A stretch of DNA of 64,000 nt from Phallusia mammillata. Taxonomy: Eukaryota. The first letter of the stretch is position 1; each line of letters starts with the position of its first letter. Shown here in pieces: positions 1 through 49,963 of this stretch. A model generated the notes under the pieces. The model had not been told where the DNA came from, did no database searches, and worked only from the letters and a program-made list of their open reading frames with translations. Where the stretch lies: the NCBI GenBank assembly GCA_965637545.1, contig OZ281501.1, positions 7,502,001-7,566,000 of the forward strand, given 5' to 3'. The translations under genes and the position numbers were made by a program.

Positions 1-2551
1 GCGCAAAGTCATGCGGCGTCTCGAAGGCTACGAAACTACTGGGAGTTGAAGTTCGGGTCAGACAAGCTTGTTTAGAACAGGTTATTTATATTTTACTGTA
101 CAGGTTTATAGCTGTATTTTGGAGGAAATTAACAGATTTTTAAGTGGTCAGTTTTGTTGCAAACTGCCATAAAAGCGGTTTGTTATGACAAGGTTACTAA
201 AAAAAAAGTATAAAAATCAAGTCCACGGGTGCAAACGTAAACAGAAAAATGACATATTGTAGCTTTTGATTAGCGTCTTTGTTTCTCGAGAAATAGTGTA
301 ACTTACGAACGGCACTGTGAACCACGTGACAAAACACGTCATCGGCATTTCCCAAGCGCCAAATTTAAACATGACATATCAGCGTGCAGGTGATGACGTC
401 AAAAGCGACCCGCATGCGCAGAAACCAGGATGATTTGCATTTTAATACATTACCTCACAAGTAACCTACATTTTTAACATGTATTAAGCATGGTTCACCA
501 CAACTGAACCAGTCAAAAAAGTTATTTACTGCACGTAAATATTTTTTCTGAGTGCTGGCGTTTGAGTTTATGGGCTGTGAAGCCCTTGATTACTATTCTT
601 CCATTAGTTCGTAGGCTGAGAAAAAGGTGTGATTAAAGGTGTTACAAAAAGCAGGTACAAGAAGAAGGGTTCCACGTTGGGAGTTAGTGATGTATGTAGT
701 TTCCTACGTGTGGTATGATGTAAAGAGTAGCCTAGTAATATATAAAAACGGGGATTTGTAATTTACTTCAAAACGCAAGAGTCGATTTTCAGCTAGAACA
801 CCATAATCTAAATAGGCAAATGATTTCACTTCCTAAACTAAATTATACAAGGGTTTATTAATGTCGCGTTGACTCGGTTGTGTCGATTACCCAAATTTTA
901 TATATTTTTGTGTTTGCTCTAATGATTCATACGTGGTGTAAAGTGCAAATTGTGTCTTGTCAATTGCAGTTTCTCAGTAACCTCGCTCTAAATGAAAATG
1001 ACAAACGTGTTTTCGATGCATTCAAATGTCATATACAAACATATGACTAACTGATAATGTTATCTTAATTTCCGGGAGCAAGAGTTTTTGAATTCGACCG
1101 CATCACAAAATAGGAGTTATTGTTAGAAGGGCGTTTCTCCAGAGCACGAAATCGGCCAATCGCGCCAGTGGATTTGCGCGCCAAATCTGACGCGTTATCA
1201 CGTGCTTTTGTTGAACAACAACCGAGCATGACACGCCACAAATGCAGGGTTAGAAATGAAGAAACGCAGTGTTGGAAAACCTAGTAGTTGACGTGGTGCA
1301 ATTCTAGATTCTTTTGCAATCTTTTGCAAAATCTTAAATCTAAACGTTAGTTTAATTGTGATTAAGTGCGAATGATACAATCCAGGCGATAGCGTAGTGC
1401 GCCATTTGGAGGTTGAATATGTCTTTGTTTTAAGTCATACTCGTATGAAGCGTGATACCGAAAAAAAGATTTGCATGCGAAAGATGTAAGTTAAAATATA
1501 GTCAGGGAAGACATTTAAATTCACGAAAAAATGTATATATACAGATATATATATAAAAGTATGACTTATTAGAAGTGGAAACACAAATGTTGATGCTGAA
1601 CGTGTGCTTTTGAACTCTTTAAATATTACACACTAATAGACTTTTAAATTCAAAAATTGGAAAACTTTAAAAAATCCTTCCAAGAAAATTGACGGGCATA
1701 CACATTTCTTCATTTTGTGCCCTGCACATTTGTGAGTTTGCACCTTATTTCGTGCCCTGCGCTTCCGTGCAAAGCGCTGTTGTTATGACAACAATAATAT
1801 CGCGTGCGTGCGGCCATTCACGAATCCCTGGCCAAGAATATCTGGATTACAGGATTGCTTGCGTGACAGCCACAGGACCAAAACACATGCACGTGGCCCA
1901 GAGAGCCGTTGGCGTGTTAACATTTACTAGGATAACATCAATTGAAAGTTCCCCATCTCCTGGAAATGCAGCAAAGCGAAGCTTATCAGATGTGGGGAAG
2001 TTAATTCGGCACATGTCACTAAATTCGCGAACTGAATAAATGCCAGAGATGATCTTAACTGTTATATTACCTGGTAACCTGGTGCTGGAAAGAAGTACTT
2101 GACATGCATTGTCACGAACATTCCCAATACCTATTTTTCGATTATTCTCTTGTCAGTAATGTTCGATAACCATGGCGTTTGTCCTGTGCAACACAAAAAC
2201 ACCGATGAGACCGGACATAAAGAAACTATAAAACATTTAATAACAATGTATTAAGCAAACTAATCTAAATTACCATCCCTTATTTAATTATATTACATGA
2301 AGCGCGACTGGCATCAAAATTTTGCTACCGACTTCAAGGAGTAGTTTTTTAAGTTAAAGTCTCACACGAAACCTCTCATATAAAAAACAAAACTAGTTTG
2401 TTGCATTAAAAGAATATTATTATTAAGTTCAAAACTATGTGGCATTGAAACTTTAAATATGAATCAAATAAAGTTGTTTTTTATGTTTCACAGTCTTTGC
2501 TCATTGCATAGAAACTTTAAGCATAAACTTTGTGTCTCTGTTCTAATCATT

Positions 2552-3583
2552 ATGAGTGATCAACAACAAAGCAATTTAAAAGACGATGACGTCATTATCC
2601 TGACGTCACCGCCGCCGGAAAATGAGGAAGACTCGGAGAGCATTGAGGAGGAAATTCAAGAGGAAACTGAGGACTCAGATCCAGAGGAACCAGATCAAAA
2701 GCAACAGCTTTCGGAAAACAATGCAAGGTTCGTGAAGGTTGAATTTGTACAATTGGTGGAAACACAATTGTGGAAAAATTAAGGGCAAAAGTAGGAATAA
2801 AAGCGTTTTTTTTTTCAAACGGAGGCAAAACTAGCATTACTATATGTCAACTGATTTTTTTTGCATGAACCAAAAACGTAGTTCAAAAATGCAGGTACAC
2901 TATACAAACTATGGAAACCACAAATGATTTTATTTAAAACGATGCCACTGAGAACCGCAAGAAGCTGGCTCGTGAACGCGGTTCATTTTAAACCAGCATT
3001 ACAAAGTCTAAAGTCCATTACTTAAGTCTCTACGGTGCAGACAAATTGCATCATGTGTTATGGCACAACATATACAAAAAGCACAACGTGCAAATCCAAT
3101 GCTAAACCACATCTAGGTCTTCCTAGAAATCGGGCGGTCTCGGGATCGCGTGTCGCCTAGAGAAATCCCGCTATGCCATGCGAGCAGAAGCATGCAGTTA
3201 TATATACGGTTTCTCCCAGTTCTAAAAACTTTGCATACCACCAGGCTCGACCACAGCAGTAGTAGAATGTGTTTTTGTGTGCGCTGCCAGCGATATATCT
3301 ACTACTCTCACGCGAACTCAGCACGCGAACACTTATCGACGGTTTGGGCTGTAAATAGTGTTGATCTAGATGAAGTGGTGTCAAGACGGATTCGGGAGTA
3401 ATGCTTCGGGGGTCACTTTTCACCATGTAGACACTATTTATCGGGAAACTAAATCGTCGATATTACACCGATGAGGAATTTATGACGCGACAAGTATGTT
3501 GTACTGTCGCCCGGATACGATGCGTTCACTGCAAGGAACCAATGAGCTTGTGTGTTGCTGACTTTTGCATTGTGAGCCTATAA
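2552..3583 (+). pseudogene. Decayed coding remnant: acidic N-terminus plus Cys/His clusters
   Basis: TATAAAA near 2378; ATG 2552 opens MSDQQQSNLKDDDVII..EEEIQEETEDSDPEE. Downstream protein-like frames are broken by stops and include CVRCQRYIYYSHANSAREHL and RCVHCKEPMSLCVADFC. Confidence 0.3.
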
Positions 3584-4066
3584 AACTGTTAGACTATAGG
3601 GTCACTTTGCGAAATGGATCACAGACAAAATTACAGAAATGACGAGGGGTTTTCATTATGTCCAATTTCACATACACTATGGACTCTTTTTAAAGGGATA
3701 GTTGTGGTATTTTACATTAGATATCATATTTTCAAAACAAGCACCGCGTTGTAACGGCAGGCGACATTACTGAATTCAATAGCACGAACGTTTCACAAGT
3801 TTATGCAATTTGTGACAAAAAAATTGTGTTAAAATTCATCCATAGTGGGGTTAAAATTGCACAATAATAATTTGGACAGACTGGTGAGAGAAAAAAGAAA
3901 ATTCGAACAAACCCAAAACTGGGTGAAATTAAATGGGTGTCGCACCAAATAGTGCTATAGTGACAGCAAATAACGTGTTTGTCCATGCGTTTGACACATT
4001 TAAAGACTTTAACGCTACTTTCTGGTCCACTTTAAACGAAGTCTAATGAGGAGTCGTTTTAGCGAC

Positions 4067-39371: not shown

Positions 39372-42163
39372 CTATTTACCTGGAGAATTGACTTTTTCTG
39401 TTAGGAATTCCACTTGCTTTTCCAAATCCAACTTTTTCATCATAAATTCTTCTGCTGTTGCATCTGGAGTTTCTGAAATCCATTCTTCTTTCTCATTGCA
39501 AGATCCAATAGCAGTTGACTGAAATATTAGCAAAATATTTAAGTGATTAAACAAACATTTTGCACATATTGGAGCATTGTCGAAAGTTGGCTTGATTTTA
39601 TTTATTTAGCTGAAAAATCATCAACACACATTATTTTAGTCATACAAAAACGACAAGCTGTTAATAGCTCTTTTTCTTTTTGAGATGTTTTTGTTTAGCA
39701 TTGTATTTCATGTGCAAGTCATTGCTCCGTTTGATGACACTTTTTAATTGAAAGGCTGGCTAACACTCTACAAAGTTATTTCTGTACATGGCAAAATATT
39801 TATTGAGCCCAAACATGTACAGTTGACAAATATAATCATGAAATATGATTTATTTATTTTTAACATTTACTAAACAAAATATCACAGATAAATTGTACCT
39901 TTTCTTCCTTGGACAGTTTAACACCTTGTAATTTTTCAGGATCTGCAATCATTTCCCGAATGTGAGCTATGAATTGGACTAATGTCATCTTCGCAGCTAA
40001 AATACACGAAAGGGTCAAATTGCATTTAACCAATACTACAAACATAAACATAATTACTTGTGGTAATACAATCTCTTAAAAATCACCCTGTCTTATCTGC
40101 TTCACTACCTGACCTAATATTATAAACATTTGCACCAAAACTGAAAGCTGAACTCAAATGCAAGTTTATTGGGGTTTGGAAAAAAACGTTTGTTAAACTT
40201 CCTCTGCCTAATAGACTTCAATTGTAATGAAACTCTCATCTCTTCTTCTTAACAGGCTTTTTTTCTTGTTCTACAGCCTTTTCTGTTGCTGAAACGAAAA
40301 CAAAGCTTCATAACCTTTTGGAAACATAACAAACCTAAACCAACATTTTATAAGATAAAGAAACAGTTTAAAGAAATTGACACCACCCTGCATAATTCAA
40401 ACAAAAGTGTTTAATCCCATACCTGCCCAGTCCAAAAATTCAATACTTGGTTTCTTTTCATATCGAACAGCTATTTGTTTGGGATTTTCTCCATGGCAAG
40501 ACCTTGCCTCAATGCTTGCTCCAGCCTCAAACAATGCCTCAAGACATGATACTTGCCCCCAGGATGCAGCAAAATGCATTGGAGTGTAACCTGAAAAGTT
40601 AAACCACACATTATACACAACATATTTACATGTATTTGTGGTTTAACATACAGTGCCGGATTGCGGCTGTACAACCACATGCACTAGCACATACAAACAT
40701 ATTCAATAATATGCAGAAATATAAAAAATATGCATAGTAGTGGATGAGCATTGATAAATATTTGGCTTTTAAATGTGGTCGGAGAATCCTTTTTTTATCC
40801 AGAAAGATTAAGTCTAATTTACAAGTTTTATCAAAGCTAAAGGTTTTAGTTGTTTAAGTCACAGCCATAGGCGCCGAGTTTTACAAAAATGCAGATGGCA
40901 AACGTAAAACTAATGAGTGCAATCACAAGAACTCAAAGTCCAATAAACTTCCTACAGAATGCAGAATTTGCCATAATTTAGAAAAAAACAAAACACGATA
41001 TGTTTGAAATAACGTTTGTCATTGTTTAGCAACGTTTAAAACTGTTTCATCAAGTTGTTGCTGCTTTATATCCTGAGATAACCATTATTATAACACATTC
41101 GCATTGTACACAATAATGACCAAACATTTACTGACAGACAATTCTGTGTTTGACGTCATAAACAAGGCACTATAACCTAAGCATGTTGCCATTTTAAGCC
41201 AGGTTTTGTGGGTATTTTGCCAATACGCTCGTTTAAAAGCATAATTGTTCCTAAATTTTTTTTAATTTGACCACATTTCATACGATACAGCTACAAACAA
41301 ACCAAAATATCCATGGTGGCCGCCACCGTGCTTTACAAAACCAAGGTGGTGGCGCCACCCCGCCACCGCTTACTCAGCGCCTATGGTCACAGCAATAGTA
41401 CCTGAGGGGCTTGCTTGGTTTGGGTCAGCTCCTCGTTTTATTAGATCTTTCAAAATATCCACCCTTCCCAACATACTTGCCAACTCAAGGGGTGTTTTGC
41501 CAAGTTTGACACGCTGAGTTAACAATTCTGCTGCATTATCATGGTTAGCATCATCAGGATTCGTAAAGACACTGAAAAATTTAAGTATTCTTAAACCAGA
41601 TAAAAAAGTGACATAATCAAATTGGTGCTCAATTAAAAACTAATGAATCAGTGAAACATACAGGAACACCATACTGTTCTGTTCACTGTTTTAGAGCTGA
41701 CCCATATAACACTGATAAGCATTATGCTAATGTTAGTAAATGTCATCATAAAAGGCTTTGCTTTTGTCATCTTTTAGGTTCTGCCTAATCATCATAAAAG
41801 GCAGAACCTAAAAGATGACAAAAGCAAAAGATATTACAACTGCTAAAAAGTGATAAATCCATAGGTCATTCATTGCAACACAACAATTACCTATCCAAAA
41901 TTATACAGGAAGTAAGCATGTATTCAATGACCAAAATATTGAAGAAACATTTTTTGGAAATTGTGAAAACAAAACACTCAAGCTAATCTTTGTAAAACAG
42001 CTTGTTTACAATACAATATCCCAACCCAAACATAAAAATCACACCTGTTGAGGCGTTCCAAATCATCATGCAAAGTACAATGCATTATAACATTTTCTCC
42101 ATCAAACTCTTCTTGGGCAGTTTGTTCATTTTCTTCTACAGCTTCGACGTCACCAGCCGTCAT
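39372..42163 (-). CDS. ANKRD45: ANKRD45-like ankyrin repeat protein, about 233 aa
   Basis: Exons 42163-42045, 41571-41402, 40590-40423, 39996-39899, 39518-39372, all phase-consistent. GKTPLELASMLG, GYTPMHFAASWGQVSCLEAL, IEFLDWAA, KLSKEEK and SCNEKEEWI align with recalled human ANKRD45 (GYTLLHCAAAWG, VEFLDWADA, KLLKEDK, ACRAKNEWL). Confidence 0.9.
40236..40288 (-). CDS. Alternative terminal exon of the ANKRD45-like gene (ATEKAVEQEKKPVKKKR*)
   Basis: Strong acceptor ttcgtttcag, phase 1 matching exon 3, TGA at 40238-40236, AATAAA on the minus strand at 40170-40165. Confidence 0.6.
40866..41385. mobile_element. Non-autonomous hAT-type element, 520 bp
   Basis: Termini CATAGGCGC / GCGCCTATG with a perfect 8-bp TSD GTCACAGC (40858-40865 and 41386-41393). 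Confidence 0.85.
41757..41828. repeat. Perfect 30-bp inverted repeat with 12-nt loop
   Basis: TTTGCTTTTGTCATCTTTTAGGTTCTGCCT (41757-41786) is the exact reverse complement of 41799-41828. Confidence 0.95.
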
Positions 42164-42501
42164 TATAACTTACCAGTGCAAAAGTCACAAAACAAAAGTT
42201 GAAACGCACTTAAACAAAACACGAAAATAATAACAAATAAACGAACTACACGTGAGGATAAAATCGTAGTACGTTTACTGGTAAACACAGCTAATTCAAA
42301 CATAAAAGTAGTTTAAGAAGTGTTTACTATCCAATCAAAGCAAGAGGGAATTTATTTAGGTTTCCAAACACAAACGAAAGTGCAGGGAATTTCCCGCAAA
42401 TTCTGTTGCTATGTACAATTCCACTAAGCGCCGCTATAACCTATAAAAAAATTACATTGGGGTAAAATATGACTTCAAATCACATTTGGAAAGCTACTTA
42501 T

Positions 42502-42845
42502 AAGCTGTGGTTCGATTCAGCCGGTTCGCACCGGCTCTACAGAACCGTCTCACGAAATTTTATGAGATCAATGAACCGGTTTGCATTACTGGTTACTGTC
42601 AATGAAATTTTGTAACTGAACCGGCTGAAAAATATGACTTTTGTAACAGAACCGGCTGACAAAAAAGCTGTGGTTCGATTCAGCCGGTTCGCACCGGCTC
42701 TACAGAACCGTCTCACGAAATTTTATGAGATCAATGAACCGGTTTGCATTACTGGTTACTGTCAATGAAATTTTGTAACTGAACCGGCTGAAAAATATGA
42801 CTTTTGTAACAGAACCGGCTGACAAAAAATTGAATTCCACCACTG
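42502..42845. mobile_element. hAT-type MITE with internal 163-bp tandem duplication
   Basis: Two apparently identical 163-bp units starting at 42502 and 42665; right TIR TGAATTCCACCACTG; same family as 49416-49595; left TIR degenerate. Confidence 0.8.
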
Positions 42846-43097
42846 CATATTAAGTATTTGCATGAGCTACATCAATTGCCCTATTAACGTTTCTGGTTTA
42901 AACCAGACCAAAACTTCCCGCATTGTTTATTACAATAAAAACGGAAGCACCAATAAGGAAATGTAACAAATACGTCGTAGGCTACAGGTGTGCAAGAGAT
43001 ATACACACGAATAAAACGTAAGAAAATATTACTAGCGCTATTTAGTCACTGTAAGGTACTGGGGCTGATGCAGACCCAAATCCATACACAAGGAAGA

Positions 43098-45114
43098 ATG
43101 AAATTTTTAGGAATGTTAAGTAAGTATTTTGTAAATTATGGAAAGTTGAACACTTTTACACTTTTGTGCTGTTTAGGCTTAGTTGTGTTTGTGAGTGGAT
43201 TTATGCTGTGCTGTGGAACACCTATGAATAGAAGACTGAAAGATATTTGCGAAGAGCTTTTACGTTTGGGTTCTGCTTCTAATGCTTCCATAAACGAAAT
43301 CAACCAATGTCGAGGTATAAGAAATCGCATGTCTACATATTTACTTTAATCTTGCATTTAGCTGTTTTGTTGCATGATTTTAAAACAATAACTTCAAACG
43401 ATCTTTTTTAAAACAATAAAAATTGCTTTGTTTAAGACTTTCCTTGTTTTGTTCCAAATACCAAATAAGAGCTTGTCATTTATTTTGTTTTAGACTATAT
43501 GCCCGATCATGGGTACAATCCCTGCCTTCCATTTGAATGTTATGATATGCCGCCATGCGATTTTGGTTACAGCGTTGACGAACTTGGATGCAAGATATGC
43601 CGATGCAACAGTAAGTACCTGCAAAAATTCCCTGCATACTATTTTTTTATGTACAAAACAAATCGTTGTTAATACTGTTTATATTTTTTTTAAATGAGCC
43701 GATAAAAATGAATTTGTTTTTGTTTTTTTGTGTAACACAGCTGTTTACAACGGTGATATCCAGTTGACTATGAAGTCTCAAGACCGCCTCAATCGGTTGC
43801 TTGGCACTGCACGCAATTCCGCTGGGGGCCAAAAGGAACAGTTGTTATGGGACAAGAACTACGATTCTGTCAAGGGCACCTACACAATTAAATTCACTCT
43901 GGAACGATCCTTAGGTACAGATGTTTTTTTGTTTTTGTGAATAAACGTGGTAGTAAAATATATGTTTGTTGGTCATAGTATTTTAAGATATTGGACGTTT
44001 TATTCTTGGAAAAAAAATTATAACATGTATGTTCTACAATAGGTGATAAGGTTACCCCATATTCTCTTATGTATAGTGCACTGTTTCGAAACCAGTTGTG
44101 TATTTGATGCGAAAAAGGTTAAATATAAAGGTCATTGTTACAGGTTATTGGTATACTTTTATTTCATAAAGAGAATTGAAAAATTTTTCGTTTCTCTTTA
44201 GAACCTTCGGCCGTGACAGCAATCTTGTCAGCTATGAGTGAAATTTCATCGACCACTTGCATCAGCTTCAGGCACTTGCGCAGTAACGATTATCACCTTG
44301 CATTCACTGGAGGTTTGGGTTGTTTTTCTAAGCTGGGAAGAAGTGGCGAAGGAGACAATCAAGAAGTAAGGCAATAACTAAGCTTGTGTAAAATATATTT
44401 TTTGCCTCATGCAAATGTTTTTATTTATTTTTTCCAGATTCGCATTGGTAGTGGTTGCGGAACGAAAGGCCGAGTATTGCATGAAATAATGCATGCTCTT
44501 GGTTTTTGGCATGAACACACGCGTCCTGACAGAGATGAACACATCAGGATTCATTGGCAAAACATTCAAATGGGTAATTAACCAGTTAAACAAAATTTTA
44601 TTTATAGCAATATATTTTTCAACATTAGAAATTATTGCTTACACGTGGAAACCACTTAATGAGATAATTGTTTTCATTTTCTACGATTTGTTTGCAAACA
44701 ACGCTCAATATTGTATACGCCTGGTGACACTAAAGAGTACATATGACGCCATTTTGGTCATTGTTAAGCGTTTGGTGAAATAACAATGCAAATTTACTTT
44801 AGATCAGCTTCGGAATTTTTTGGTTCGCGACCAGCTGGAAGTTGATGTATCGGAGTCCACTTATGACGTCACAAGCGTTATGCAGTACGATTCATACGCG
44901 TTTTCGAAAAACGGTCGGCCAACCATGACGGATTTGTCAGGAAACGTCATCAGTAGACAGGTAATGTGACGTAACAAAGACGTTTTCCGTTTGTGGTACA
45001 AGTTCACTAAGGGTTAATAACGAATGACTAACCCCATTGTGTGTTTAGAATGAAGACCTTTCTGAGCAAGACATCAAACGCATCAACCTTCTCTACAAAT
45101 GTCCTAACCATTAA
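43098..45114 (+). CDS. Secreted astacin (M12A) metalloprotease with antistasin-like module in the prodomain, 324 aa
   Basis: Exons 43098-43119, 43177-43314, 43494-43610, 43741-43914, 44202-44365, 44438-44573, 44803-44960, 45049-45114 total 975 nt. Signal peptide; YNGDI aspartate-switch motif; [19 protein letters not shown] zinc signature; Met-turn SVMQY; terminal INLLYKC. Confidence 0.95.
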
Positions 45115-45673
45115 TGGGACAGTAAAGACATTTTTTGCTGTTTAATTTTAACAAATACTGTGTAAATACATATGCAGTCAATAAGTTGTGTTGGGTTTGT
45201 TTACCAGTTTGGAGCAATACAATTCCCAAGATTAGGTTCTTAAAATAGCTGCAGAAATTCCAAATCCACTTTCAATTAGGAAACAATTTAAAGCGTTTTA
45301 CCAATTGTGACCTCAAGACATTTCGCTTATTGTTCGTTGAAAAGTTTAAGCTGCGTCACTATGCTGGTATTTCCAATAAAGATTGGTTCCAATTCGACCT
45401 TGAAGTTTGGTTTCGATATTCACCTTGACAAACGCAGACTTTGGCCAAGCAAGGGAAATAATGAAAAACGCATTTTGGTTGTCAAAGCAAAGCACCATAG
45501 CAAAATAGGTTGCAGACCTTTTTGCCACTAGACTGTCAAGCAAGAAAATATATTTCTGTAGATTATACTGAGTCTTTACATATCAAACTTTGTCAGTAAC
45601 AGATACTTACGTTTTTGCCGATTTTCAGCAGGCATAAATTTCTTTCAGATCAGCCCAGTATCAAGATAATAAA

Positions 45674-48679: not shown

Positions 48680-49963
48680 ATGAAGATTGCCGTTTTGGTG
48701 CTGTTTGTTGGTCTTTTCTTGGTTTGCAACACTGTTGCTTTTCCTGTCGGTGAAGGTAAGGTTTGGTGTGAATATACGTAGTTAAACAGATTTTCCTTCA
48801 TGAAAAGCCAACGTTTTTGGCGAAATCCAAACAACATTTTAAAAATATTAATTTTGCACCAAGAAGTTTGCTTTAAACGAAATATGTGCAGCGATTGGAT
48901 TAAACAAAAATTAGCTGGTTCATCCCAAGTAACTACTAATTTAAACTTAATGTGATTAGATTGCTTAACAGGTAGTTTGTTTGTTTTAGATGTCGAAGTG
49001 GCGGGTGGAGAAGAAGATAGTGGCAGTCTGTGGGGAAGACTGAAGTCCTATATATCGGGATGGGATGTTGAAACACTTCAAAACCATGCGGCTAAAGTAA
49101 AGTAAGAAATATAACATATACAATGCAGTAGTGGGATTCAAATTTTTTGTCAGCCGGTTCTATCACAAAAGTCATATTTTTTCAGTCGGTTCTGTTGCAA
49201 AAAAGTCCATTGGCAGTAACCAGTGATTCTAACCGGTTCGCTGATCTCATAAAATTTCGTAAGACGGTTCATCAGTGATATGATGGCCCTACAGTTGGAC
49301 AAGCATGTCGCTTTTTACGTCTACGTTATTTTCATCATTAAACTTATGATCAGATCCGTATAGTGTTCCATTTTCTTATTTATATATAGGTTGTTTTATT
49401 TTATATATATATGACCACTGGTGGGATTCAGCCGGTTCGCACCGGTTCTATAGAACCGTCTCACCAAATTTCATGAGATCAGCGAACCGGTTAGCATTAC
49501 TGGTTACTGTCAATGGGCTTTTTGTTACAGAACCGACTGAAAAATATGACTTTTGTGAGAGAACCGGCTGACAAAAAAATTGAATCCCACCACTGCATAT
49601 GACCCAATTCTATCTTAGGATGCTTAACATGTAAGACTAAAGCGATTTATGGACGAGCTTCGTGTTATTAACAGATGTTTCCATACCCTCTTTAAAATTT
49701 TAAAACAGCATACACAACAACTTTTACTAATTTTTTCTCCTAATGACCCAATTCAACCAACATAACCTTTTCACCCTAATAGCTTCCGAACCCCGAACCA
49801 AATCACTAATGAATATTTATAATACAGAGCCAAAATTACGGAGTTAGTGGCTGACAGCAATGTCCAAGCATCGGCAGCCGACCTATATAGGGCTGCGAAG
49901 AAACTTGCCAAAGATACTTACGTGAAACTCAGCGGCACCAATGCTGAAATTGTGGAACCATAA
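48680..49963 (+). CDS. Small secreted amphipathic-helix protein B (apolipoprotein-like), 107 aa
   Basis: Exons 48680-48755, 48990-49101, 49828-49963 (phases 1 and 2); AATAAA at 50043. MKIAVLVLFVGLFLVCNTVA-FPVGEDVEVAGGEEDSGSLWGRLKSYISGWDVETLQNHAAKVKAKITELVADSNVQASAADLYRAAKKLAKDTYVKLSGTNAEIVEP. Confidence 0.88.
49126..49270 (-). mobile_element. Truncated inverted copy of hAT MITE
   Basis: Reverse complement of 49453-49595 with scattered mismatches; begins CAGTAGTGGGATTCA. Confidence 0.8.
49416..49595. mobile_element. hAT-type MITE, 180 bp
   Basis: TIRs CACTGGTGGGATTCA / TGAATCCCACCACTG; TSD TATATGAC / CATATGAC (7/8). Confidence 0.85.

Follow-up and report, generated by a model that had tools for sequence, protein, structure and literature searches.

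A six-cysteine antistasin-type module ahead of the aspartate switch in an astacin propeptide of the ascidian Phallusia mammillata

Background

Tasts, the tunicate astacins with thrombospondin type 1 (TSP1) repeats, are sperm proteases of Ciona and Halocynthia. They combine an N-terminal membrane anchor and TSP1 repeats with an astacin domain, and one Tast paper includes an AF2 model in which the pro-domain lies in the active site. Astacin zymogens with an aspartate switch include crayfish pro-astacin (3LQ0), human pro-meprin beta (4GWM), pro-meprin alpha (7UAC) and Limulus LAST-MAM (8A28), which have an FxGDI-type propeptide, the zinc-site consensus HExxHxxGxxHExxRxDRD and a Met-turn Tyr. In their 2023 review Gomis-Ruth and Stocker (PMC9848320) listed more than 30 astacin accessory domains and described prosegments which range from short to long, are essentially unstructured and have only FXGDI in common; neither an antistasin module nor a folded propeptide domain is in that catalogue.

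Antistasin-type modules also occur in other proteins. Multi-repeat antistasin-like proteins, such as the CRIM1-type proteins, consist of tandem repeats without a protease domain. The leech proteins antistasin (1SKZ), hirustasin (1BX7/1HIA), bdellastasin (1C9P) and guamerin (3BG4) are free inhibitors with ten Cys per domain: an N-terminal four-Cys subdomain followed by a six-Cys framework (G...D..GC..C.C) with a 3-residue Cys2-Cys3 loop which carries the specificity-defining P1 residue.

Here we describe an astacin gene in a 64,000-nucleotide stretch of Phallusia mammillata DNA (the window, to which all positions refer unless another contig is named), in which a single antistasin-type module lies inside the propeptide, and compare it with its paralogues and with astacins of other ascidians.

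Gene structure and transcripts

The gene contains 8 exons, whose features are as follows (X1, X5 and X11 are RNA-type sequencing runs with matching contigs):

Exon 1a, 43057..43119, plus strand: 5' UTR and start of the coding sequence, with in-frame ATG codons at 43068 and 43098; contigs start at 43057 and 43062
Intron 1, 43120..43176, plus strand: 57 nt, GT..AG, in frame; junction 43119>43177 in X1 and X5
Exon 1b, 43177..43314, plus strand: signal peptide (remainder) and first part of the propeptide, containing two Cys and INEINQ (43290-43307); no Pfam match
Exon 2, 43494..43610, plus strand: 117 nt, symmetric cassette in phase 1-1 for the antistasin-like module, with ttttAG before it and GTaagt after it
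Six-Cys framework, 43523..43606, plus strand: Cys spacing 4,5,10,2,1; PF02822, 23.8 bits
Exon 3, 43741..43914, plus strand: aspartate switch YNGDI (43746-43760), linker, predicted activation site TAR/NS and start of the catalytic domain
Exon 4, 44202..44365, plus strand: astacin catalytic domain, Pfam positions 20-67; PF01400, 30.3 bits
Exon 5, 44438..44573, plus strand: zinc site (44480-44536); PF01400, 68.4 bits
Exon 6, 44803..44960, plus strand: Met-turn SVMQY (44874-44888) with the zinc-binding Tyr; PF01400, 31.2 bits
Exon 7, 45049..45402, plus strand: end of the catalytic domain, TAA at 45112-45114, 3' UTR and AATAAA at 45375; the X11 contig ends at 45402

The flanking exon borders, placed by eye and checked by script, all follow AG/GT and leave one joint open frame. 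Between 27 and 42% of the sampled words of window 43000-45300 were contained in 12 runs from three studies, a fraction close to the exonic share of this interval (~45%), and two runs contained 97% of them. We aligned the contigs of one run from each of the three studies (X1, X5 and X11) and of one of the 97% runs (X9). The first three each gave one contig which matched the predicted exons exactly, with exon 2 spliced in through junctions 43314>43494 and 43610>43741, while the X9 contig was unspliced, as expected of genomic DNA. As exon 2 is spliced into transcripts in three studies, a pseudo-exon or annotation artefact is ruled out; inclusion was judged from contigs, which do not reveal rare isoforms such as a minor exon-skipped form. 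The sequence-only reading, which had proposed this exon with its phase, its six-Cys pattern and its place between INEINQ and YNGDI, was thus borne out at the transcript level; INEINQ is on the previous exon and YNGDI opens the next. Its first exon includes an additional 57-nt in-frame intron at 43120-43176; splicing this out shortens the protein by 19 residues and gives an ordinary hydrophobic signal peptide. The AATAAA at 45375 is consistent with a contig that ends at 45402. In exon 6 the X5 contig, and it alone, shows two C>T differences (44876 and 44916), which are probably allelic or strain variants.

The product has 324 aa if translation starts at the ATG at 43098. A start at 43068, where the contigs include another ATG in the same frame, would make it 334 aa long. 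The protein consists of a putative cleavable signal peptide, a propeptide of ~95 aa and the catalytic domain of an astacin. Its stop codon comes 21 codons into exon 7, directly past the catalytic domain, which leaves no C-terminal accessory domains. The zinc consensus HExxHxxGxxHE is followed by xxRxDRD, and the Met-turn is of the SIMHY type, with Met and Tyr kept and His replaced by Gln. At the place of the switch YNGDI, paralogues and homologues have F-x-G/E-D-I. This protein shares the propeptide motif, the zinc site and the Met-turn Tyr with the solved astacin zymogens. Their prosegments are described as essentially unstructured (PMC9848320), whereas here a six-Cys knot adjoins the switch, with its last Cys 7 residues ahead of the zinc-binding Asp in YNGDI. 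Membership of the Tast family was ruled out, as this protein has no TSP1 repeats and ends after the catalytic domain; unlike the Tasts, it begins with a putative signal peptide.

The module and its relatives among protease inhibitors

The module has the six Cys and the G..D..GC..C.C signature of the Antistasin family. The reading frame of exon 2 begins at 43496, and its translation reached 23.8 bits with Pfam Antistasin PF02822 (cut-off 21.2, E 6.5e-5) in an alignment to all 26 positions of the model. In a six-frame scan of the genome it scored 22.2 bits. The Antistasin HMM which the sequence-only reading had named as a check therefore recognises the exon. We compared a profile of 14 modules with the PDB and found that guamerin (E 0.0015), hirustasin, bdellastasin and antistasin were the only matches; in all four leech inhibitors the alignments cover the C-terminal three-disulfide subdomain carrying the reactive loop. 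The AF2 model of this gene's module alone had a pLDDT of 64, and 7 of its 9 Foldseek neighbours were antistasin-type inhibitors (rmsd 0.9-3.3 A over 20-32 columns, all with E >1). The Pfam and PDB profile matches indicate homology of the module with the C-terminal subdomain by which antistasin-type inhibitors bind proteases.

It differs from the leech inhibitors in several respects. They are free inhibitors, whereas the module is part of a protease propeptide. The N-terminal four-Cys subdomain is absent from this propeptide, where the two Cys upstream (in KDIC and NQC) are on a separate exon and bear no similarity to it. The Cys2-Cys3 loop has 5 residues here (C-YDMPP-C), as it does in the paralogues L010 and L014, compared with 3 in the proven inhibitors (Cys-P1-x-x-Cys), and the P1-equivalent residue is not conserved, since the astacin-linked modules have S, T, P, E, L, M, A or Y in its place. 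The spacing 4,5,10,2,1 recurs exactly in multi-repeat antistasin proteins. In genes of that kind, such as the 8-repeat gene at C4:21.935-21.940 Mb, each repeat has its own small exon, like the module exon here, and the last two Cys spacings are likewise 2,1; the module described here is a single copy inside a propeptide.

Occurrence in the Phallusia genome

A six-frame scan of the 240 Mb assembly gave 26 PF02822 matches, and a PF01400 scan of the same assembly gave 137 exon matches, which we counted as ~49 astacin genes. At least 14 of the PF02822 matches sit 0.5-3 kb upstream of an astacin catalytic domain on the same strand, the remainder being in multi-repeat genes without a protease domain. 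In 11 paralogues (alignment A1) the module runs directly into the switch on one exon, with the pattern ...GC-x2-3-C-x-C-K-x2-G-x-F-[ED]-G-D-I. Searching the genome with the A1 profile brought the number of astacin-linked modules to 23, mostly on the same exon as the switch, that is in 23 of the ~49 astacin genes, of which ~15 had their propeptides judged from scan coordinates only. Among the astacin-linked modules, that of this gene diverges most, scoring 38 bits with the family profile. PF02822 and the A1 profile were needed for these results, since exon 2 used as a single protein query found only itself in its own genome. The astacin clusters on C4 seem to be without any module.

Three further astacin loci were noted during the scans. 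At C6:19.13-19.22 Mb there is a tandem cluster of ~8 astacin genes (including L033 3478-3780, plus strand, and L036 6202-6483 in the minus-strand reading) whose propeptides carry, immediately ahead of an xxDDI switch, a different and more divergent stretch rich in Cys (ECC-x-PVDC…CKC-x-C), which escaped both PF02822 and the A1 profile. At L047 (C2:4980000-4989999) a 779-aa retrotransposon pol-like open frame (1354-3690 in the minus-strand reading) lies directly upstream of astacin catalytic exons, and propeptide exons were not found within the 10 kb examined. On the minus strand at C7:4954658-4954789 there is a module-and-switch exon (63 bits) with FEGDS in place of FEGDI, downstream of which astacin catalytic exons were not detected; it may be what is left of a paralogue that has decayed, with an intact paralogue on either side.

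Occurrence in other species

We searched 1.84 billion representative proteins with the A1 profile and obtained 282 matches at E<=0.001. Multi-repeat antistasin proteins rank highest, and among the best 150 of the 282 there are ~45 proteins in which a single copy, at residues 30-170, matches through the switch. PF01400 was found in 25 of the 31 single-copy matches which were aligned (A2), TSP_1 in 17 and FG-GAP in 14; only 7 of the 31 reached PF02822 at E<=0.001, which may explain why the module went unnoticed. Thirty matches were looked up, and all of the 22 that fell in named clusters are ascidian: Ciona intestinalis/robusta, Styela clava and Clavelina lepadiformis. Among them are the Ciona sperm proteases Tast2b (AZM68748) and Tast2c (AZM68750) as well as AZM68747, in which the module is fused to FEGDI or FEGDV ahead of the astacin domain, much as in our gene, with a spacing of 6,3,10-12,3,1 in the Tasts as against 4,5,10,2,1. 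The consensus of the ascidian matches is C-x-F-D-x3-C-x3-C-P-F-G-[YF]-x2-D-x2-GC-x2-S-C-x-C-A-x2-G-x-F-E-G-D-I. No non-tunicate protein with module and switch was seen among the best 150 of the 282 matches, and no close orthologue of this gene was among the retrieved proteins. A word-index search with the module and switch of Ciona P0110 returned the query only and is uninformative on other phyla.

What more than 40 ascidian astacins have in common is not the loop but the position of the knot, which lies a short way ahead of the switch Asp and in most cases shares an exon with it. Judged from these profile searches, ascidian astacin propeptides carry the module as an inherited, family-wide element, and it is not a private insertion. 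The architecture had been put forward as unfamiliar and possibly new. It is common in this genome and occurs in at least three other ascidian genera, Tasts included; it was unseen outside ascidians among the best 150 of the 282 matches and is undescribed in the literature searched. The module is not mentioned in the Tast papers (including PMC11673157), papers which name both antistasin and astacin (including PMC9382459) concern separate proteins in those examined, and, judged from titles and abstracts, the literature on antistasin in ascidians contains no description of the module in an astacin propeptide. Ascidian proteins bearing the module are already in public databases, where automatic annotation should flag the domain in a minority. 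What we describe is thus an undescribed feature of partly known proteins and not a new kind of system.

Module subtypes and their origin

The astacin-linked modules fall into three types by Cys spacing:

Type 1, spacing 6-7,3,10-11,3,1: this genome, and the common type in other ascidians
Type 2, spacing 4-5,3,10,2,2: this genome
Type 3, spacing 4,5,10,2,1: this gene and a head-to-head pair at C1:27.30 Mb

The three type-3 genes share a module exon of its own in phase 1-1 and a phase-1 intron in the codon five residues ahead of the switch Asp. Trees of the catalytic domain were built from exon pieces placed on the HMM, using FastTree and a quick IQ-TREE search. They put this gene among the module-bearing ascidian astacins, with weak deep branches, and an AU test did not reject the three type-3 genes as one clade (p 0.476). 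Spacing and introns place this gene in a small subtype with the C1:27.30 Mb pair. It is one divergent member of the family rather than a unique invention.

The type-3 module could have been acquired secondarily, a canonical antistasin phase 1-1 exon from a multi-repeat gene having replaced the older astacin-type module by exon shuffling. Its last two spacings (2,1) agree with the multi-repeat proteins and not with the common astacin type (6,3,10-12,3,1), the repeats of a multi-repeat protein give its best BLAST match (54% over 28 aa) within the set of retrieved proteins, and its exon is symmetric and separated from the switch by an intron. However, the module occupies a position identical to that in the other 20 paralogues, and it is too short for a reliable tree; the catalytic-domain tree is poorly resolved. 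We regard this origin as unlikely; it concerns origin only and would fit either of the functions considered below.

A possible role in latency

Our reading is that the module belongs to the latency apparatus of these zymogens. Since prosegments run opposite to the substrate, and the Asp replaces the catalytic water (PMC9848320), the part of the propeptide upstream of the Asp should lie on the primed side. With a prosegment running backwards through the active-site cleft in this way, we infer that the knot, being just ahead of the switch Asp, would lie where the cleft ends on its primed side. A rigid knot there would anchor the switch and keep the zymogen latent, and cleavage in the flexible linker past the switch would release propeptide and knot together.

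This cleavage would probably occur after the Arg in GTAR/NSAG (the slash marks the bond), by a trypsin-like enzyme. The predicted activation Arg codon (43812-43814) comes from the alignment to the mature N-terminus of astacin and places the site 12 residues ahead of the conserved Trp, compared with 10 for the mature N-terminus of crayfish astacin, so that some trimming would follow cleavage here.

We used the AF2 model of a Ciona homologue, P0068 (XP_002126824, alignment A3), to examine this arrangement. Module and switch have a pLDDT of 77-92, the linker (residues 89-98) is below 50 and the catalytic domain is above 90. The superposition of the solved zymogens 8a28_B and 7uac_H on the model begins at residue 64, the switch, and that of mature enzymes only at residue 96. 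These confidences and superpositions, which belong to the Ciona homologue and not to the Phallusia protein, suggest a module that may act as a rigid cap anchoring the switch. In a complex test of P0068 residues 28-63, the module alone, against its own catalytic domain, the score was 0.02, which counts neither for nor against a contact. The knot is not needed for latency in general, as the solved astacin zymogens are latent with short unstructured prosegments and module-less paralogues (the C4 clusters) exist in this genome. The moderate confidence of the model of this gene's own module (pLDDT 64) and its divergence within the astacin-linked set also speak against this role. Taken as a whole, the explanation that this is an expressed minimal astacin whose family-wide module serves as a disulfide-knotted latency cap seems to us somewhat more probable than an even chance.

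The sequence-only reading had instead raised the idea of a working canonical (Laskowski-type) serine-protease inhibitor, which would gate activation while attached and act as a second effector once released. The homology to the reactive-loop subdomain of hirustasin, guamerin, bdellastasin and antistasin agrees with this, as does the high variability between paralogues of the residue after the second Cys (P1), which is typical of reactive sites; and an activation site predicted to follow an Arg would make a serine protease the likely activator. That same P1 residue is neither basic nor conserved, however, and Pro, which is unfit for canonical binding, is among the residues found there. The 5-residue loop in this gene, L010 and L014 departs from the 3 residues of proven inhibitors, the leech N-terminal four-Cys subdomain is absent, and what stays constant in the family is the distance to the Asp switch and not the loop. 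An inhibitory role, possible but weakly supported by the sequence, thus appears improbable to us. Still more doubtful is the stronger form, in which these zymogens are two-in-one precursors whose canonical inhibitor knot shields them from the activator and is then freed as an independent inhibitor. Should it be true, a single gene product would couple metalloprotease and serine-protease cascades, including in the sperm Tasts at fertilisation.

We give the least credence to a module whose main task would be binding or targeting (to matrix, egg coat, metal ions or some other protein), so that it placed or tethered the zymogen rather than controlling its latency. In its favour, antistasin-like repeats are also present in adhesive and matrix proteins, for which the authors of PMC9382459 propose stability or metal binding and not inhibition, and the propeptide remains beside the membrane anchor in type II membrane Tasts (PMC11673157). 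Tethering, however, would need neither a fixed, very short distance to the switch Asp nor a common exon, and a module removed on activation cannot target the active enzyme.

On the latency-cap reading, a knot welded to the latency switch in about half of the astacins of one ascidian and in three other genera, a set that includes sperm proteases proposed to open the egg coat, offers a handle on latency and activation. It also provides a natural case in which to ask whether an inhibitor fold has been recruited as a structural cap or is still inhibiting.

Genomic surroundings of the gene

We also looked at the sequence on either side of the gene. A short interspersed repeat, in which certain ORF pieces recur (…RFSRFAPALQNRLTKFYEINEPVCITGYCQ), has copies at window 42469-42893 and 49131-49607. 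At 42800-42893 the depth in X9 is ~16,700, compared with 97 for the gene, and RNA contigs from elsewhere end there, which together indicate that an element of very high copy number immediately precedes the astacin gene. Further upstream, on the minus strand at window 40397-42163, there are ankyrin repeat-like ORF pieces (…HFAASWGQVSCLEALFEAGASIEARS…, …LGRVDILKDLIKRGADPNQASPSG…), which suggest a neighbouring gene on the opposite strand.
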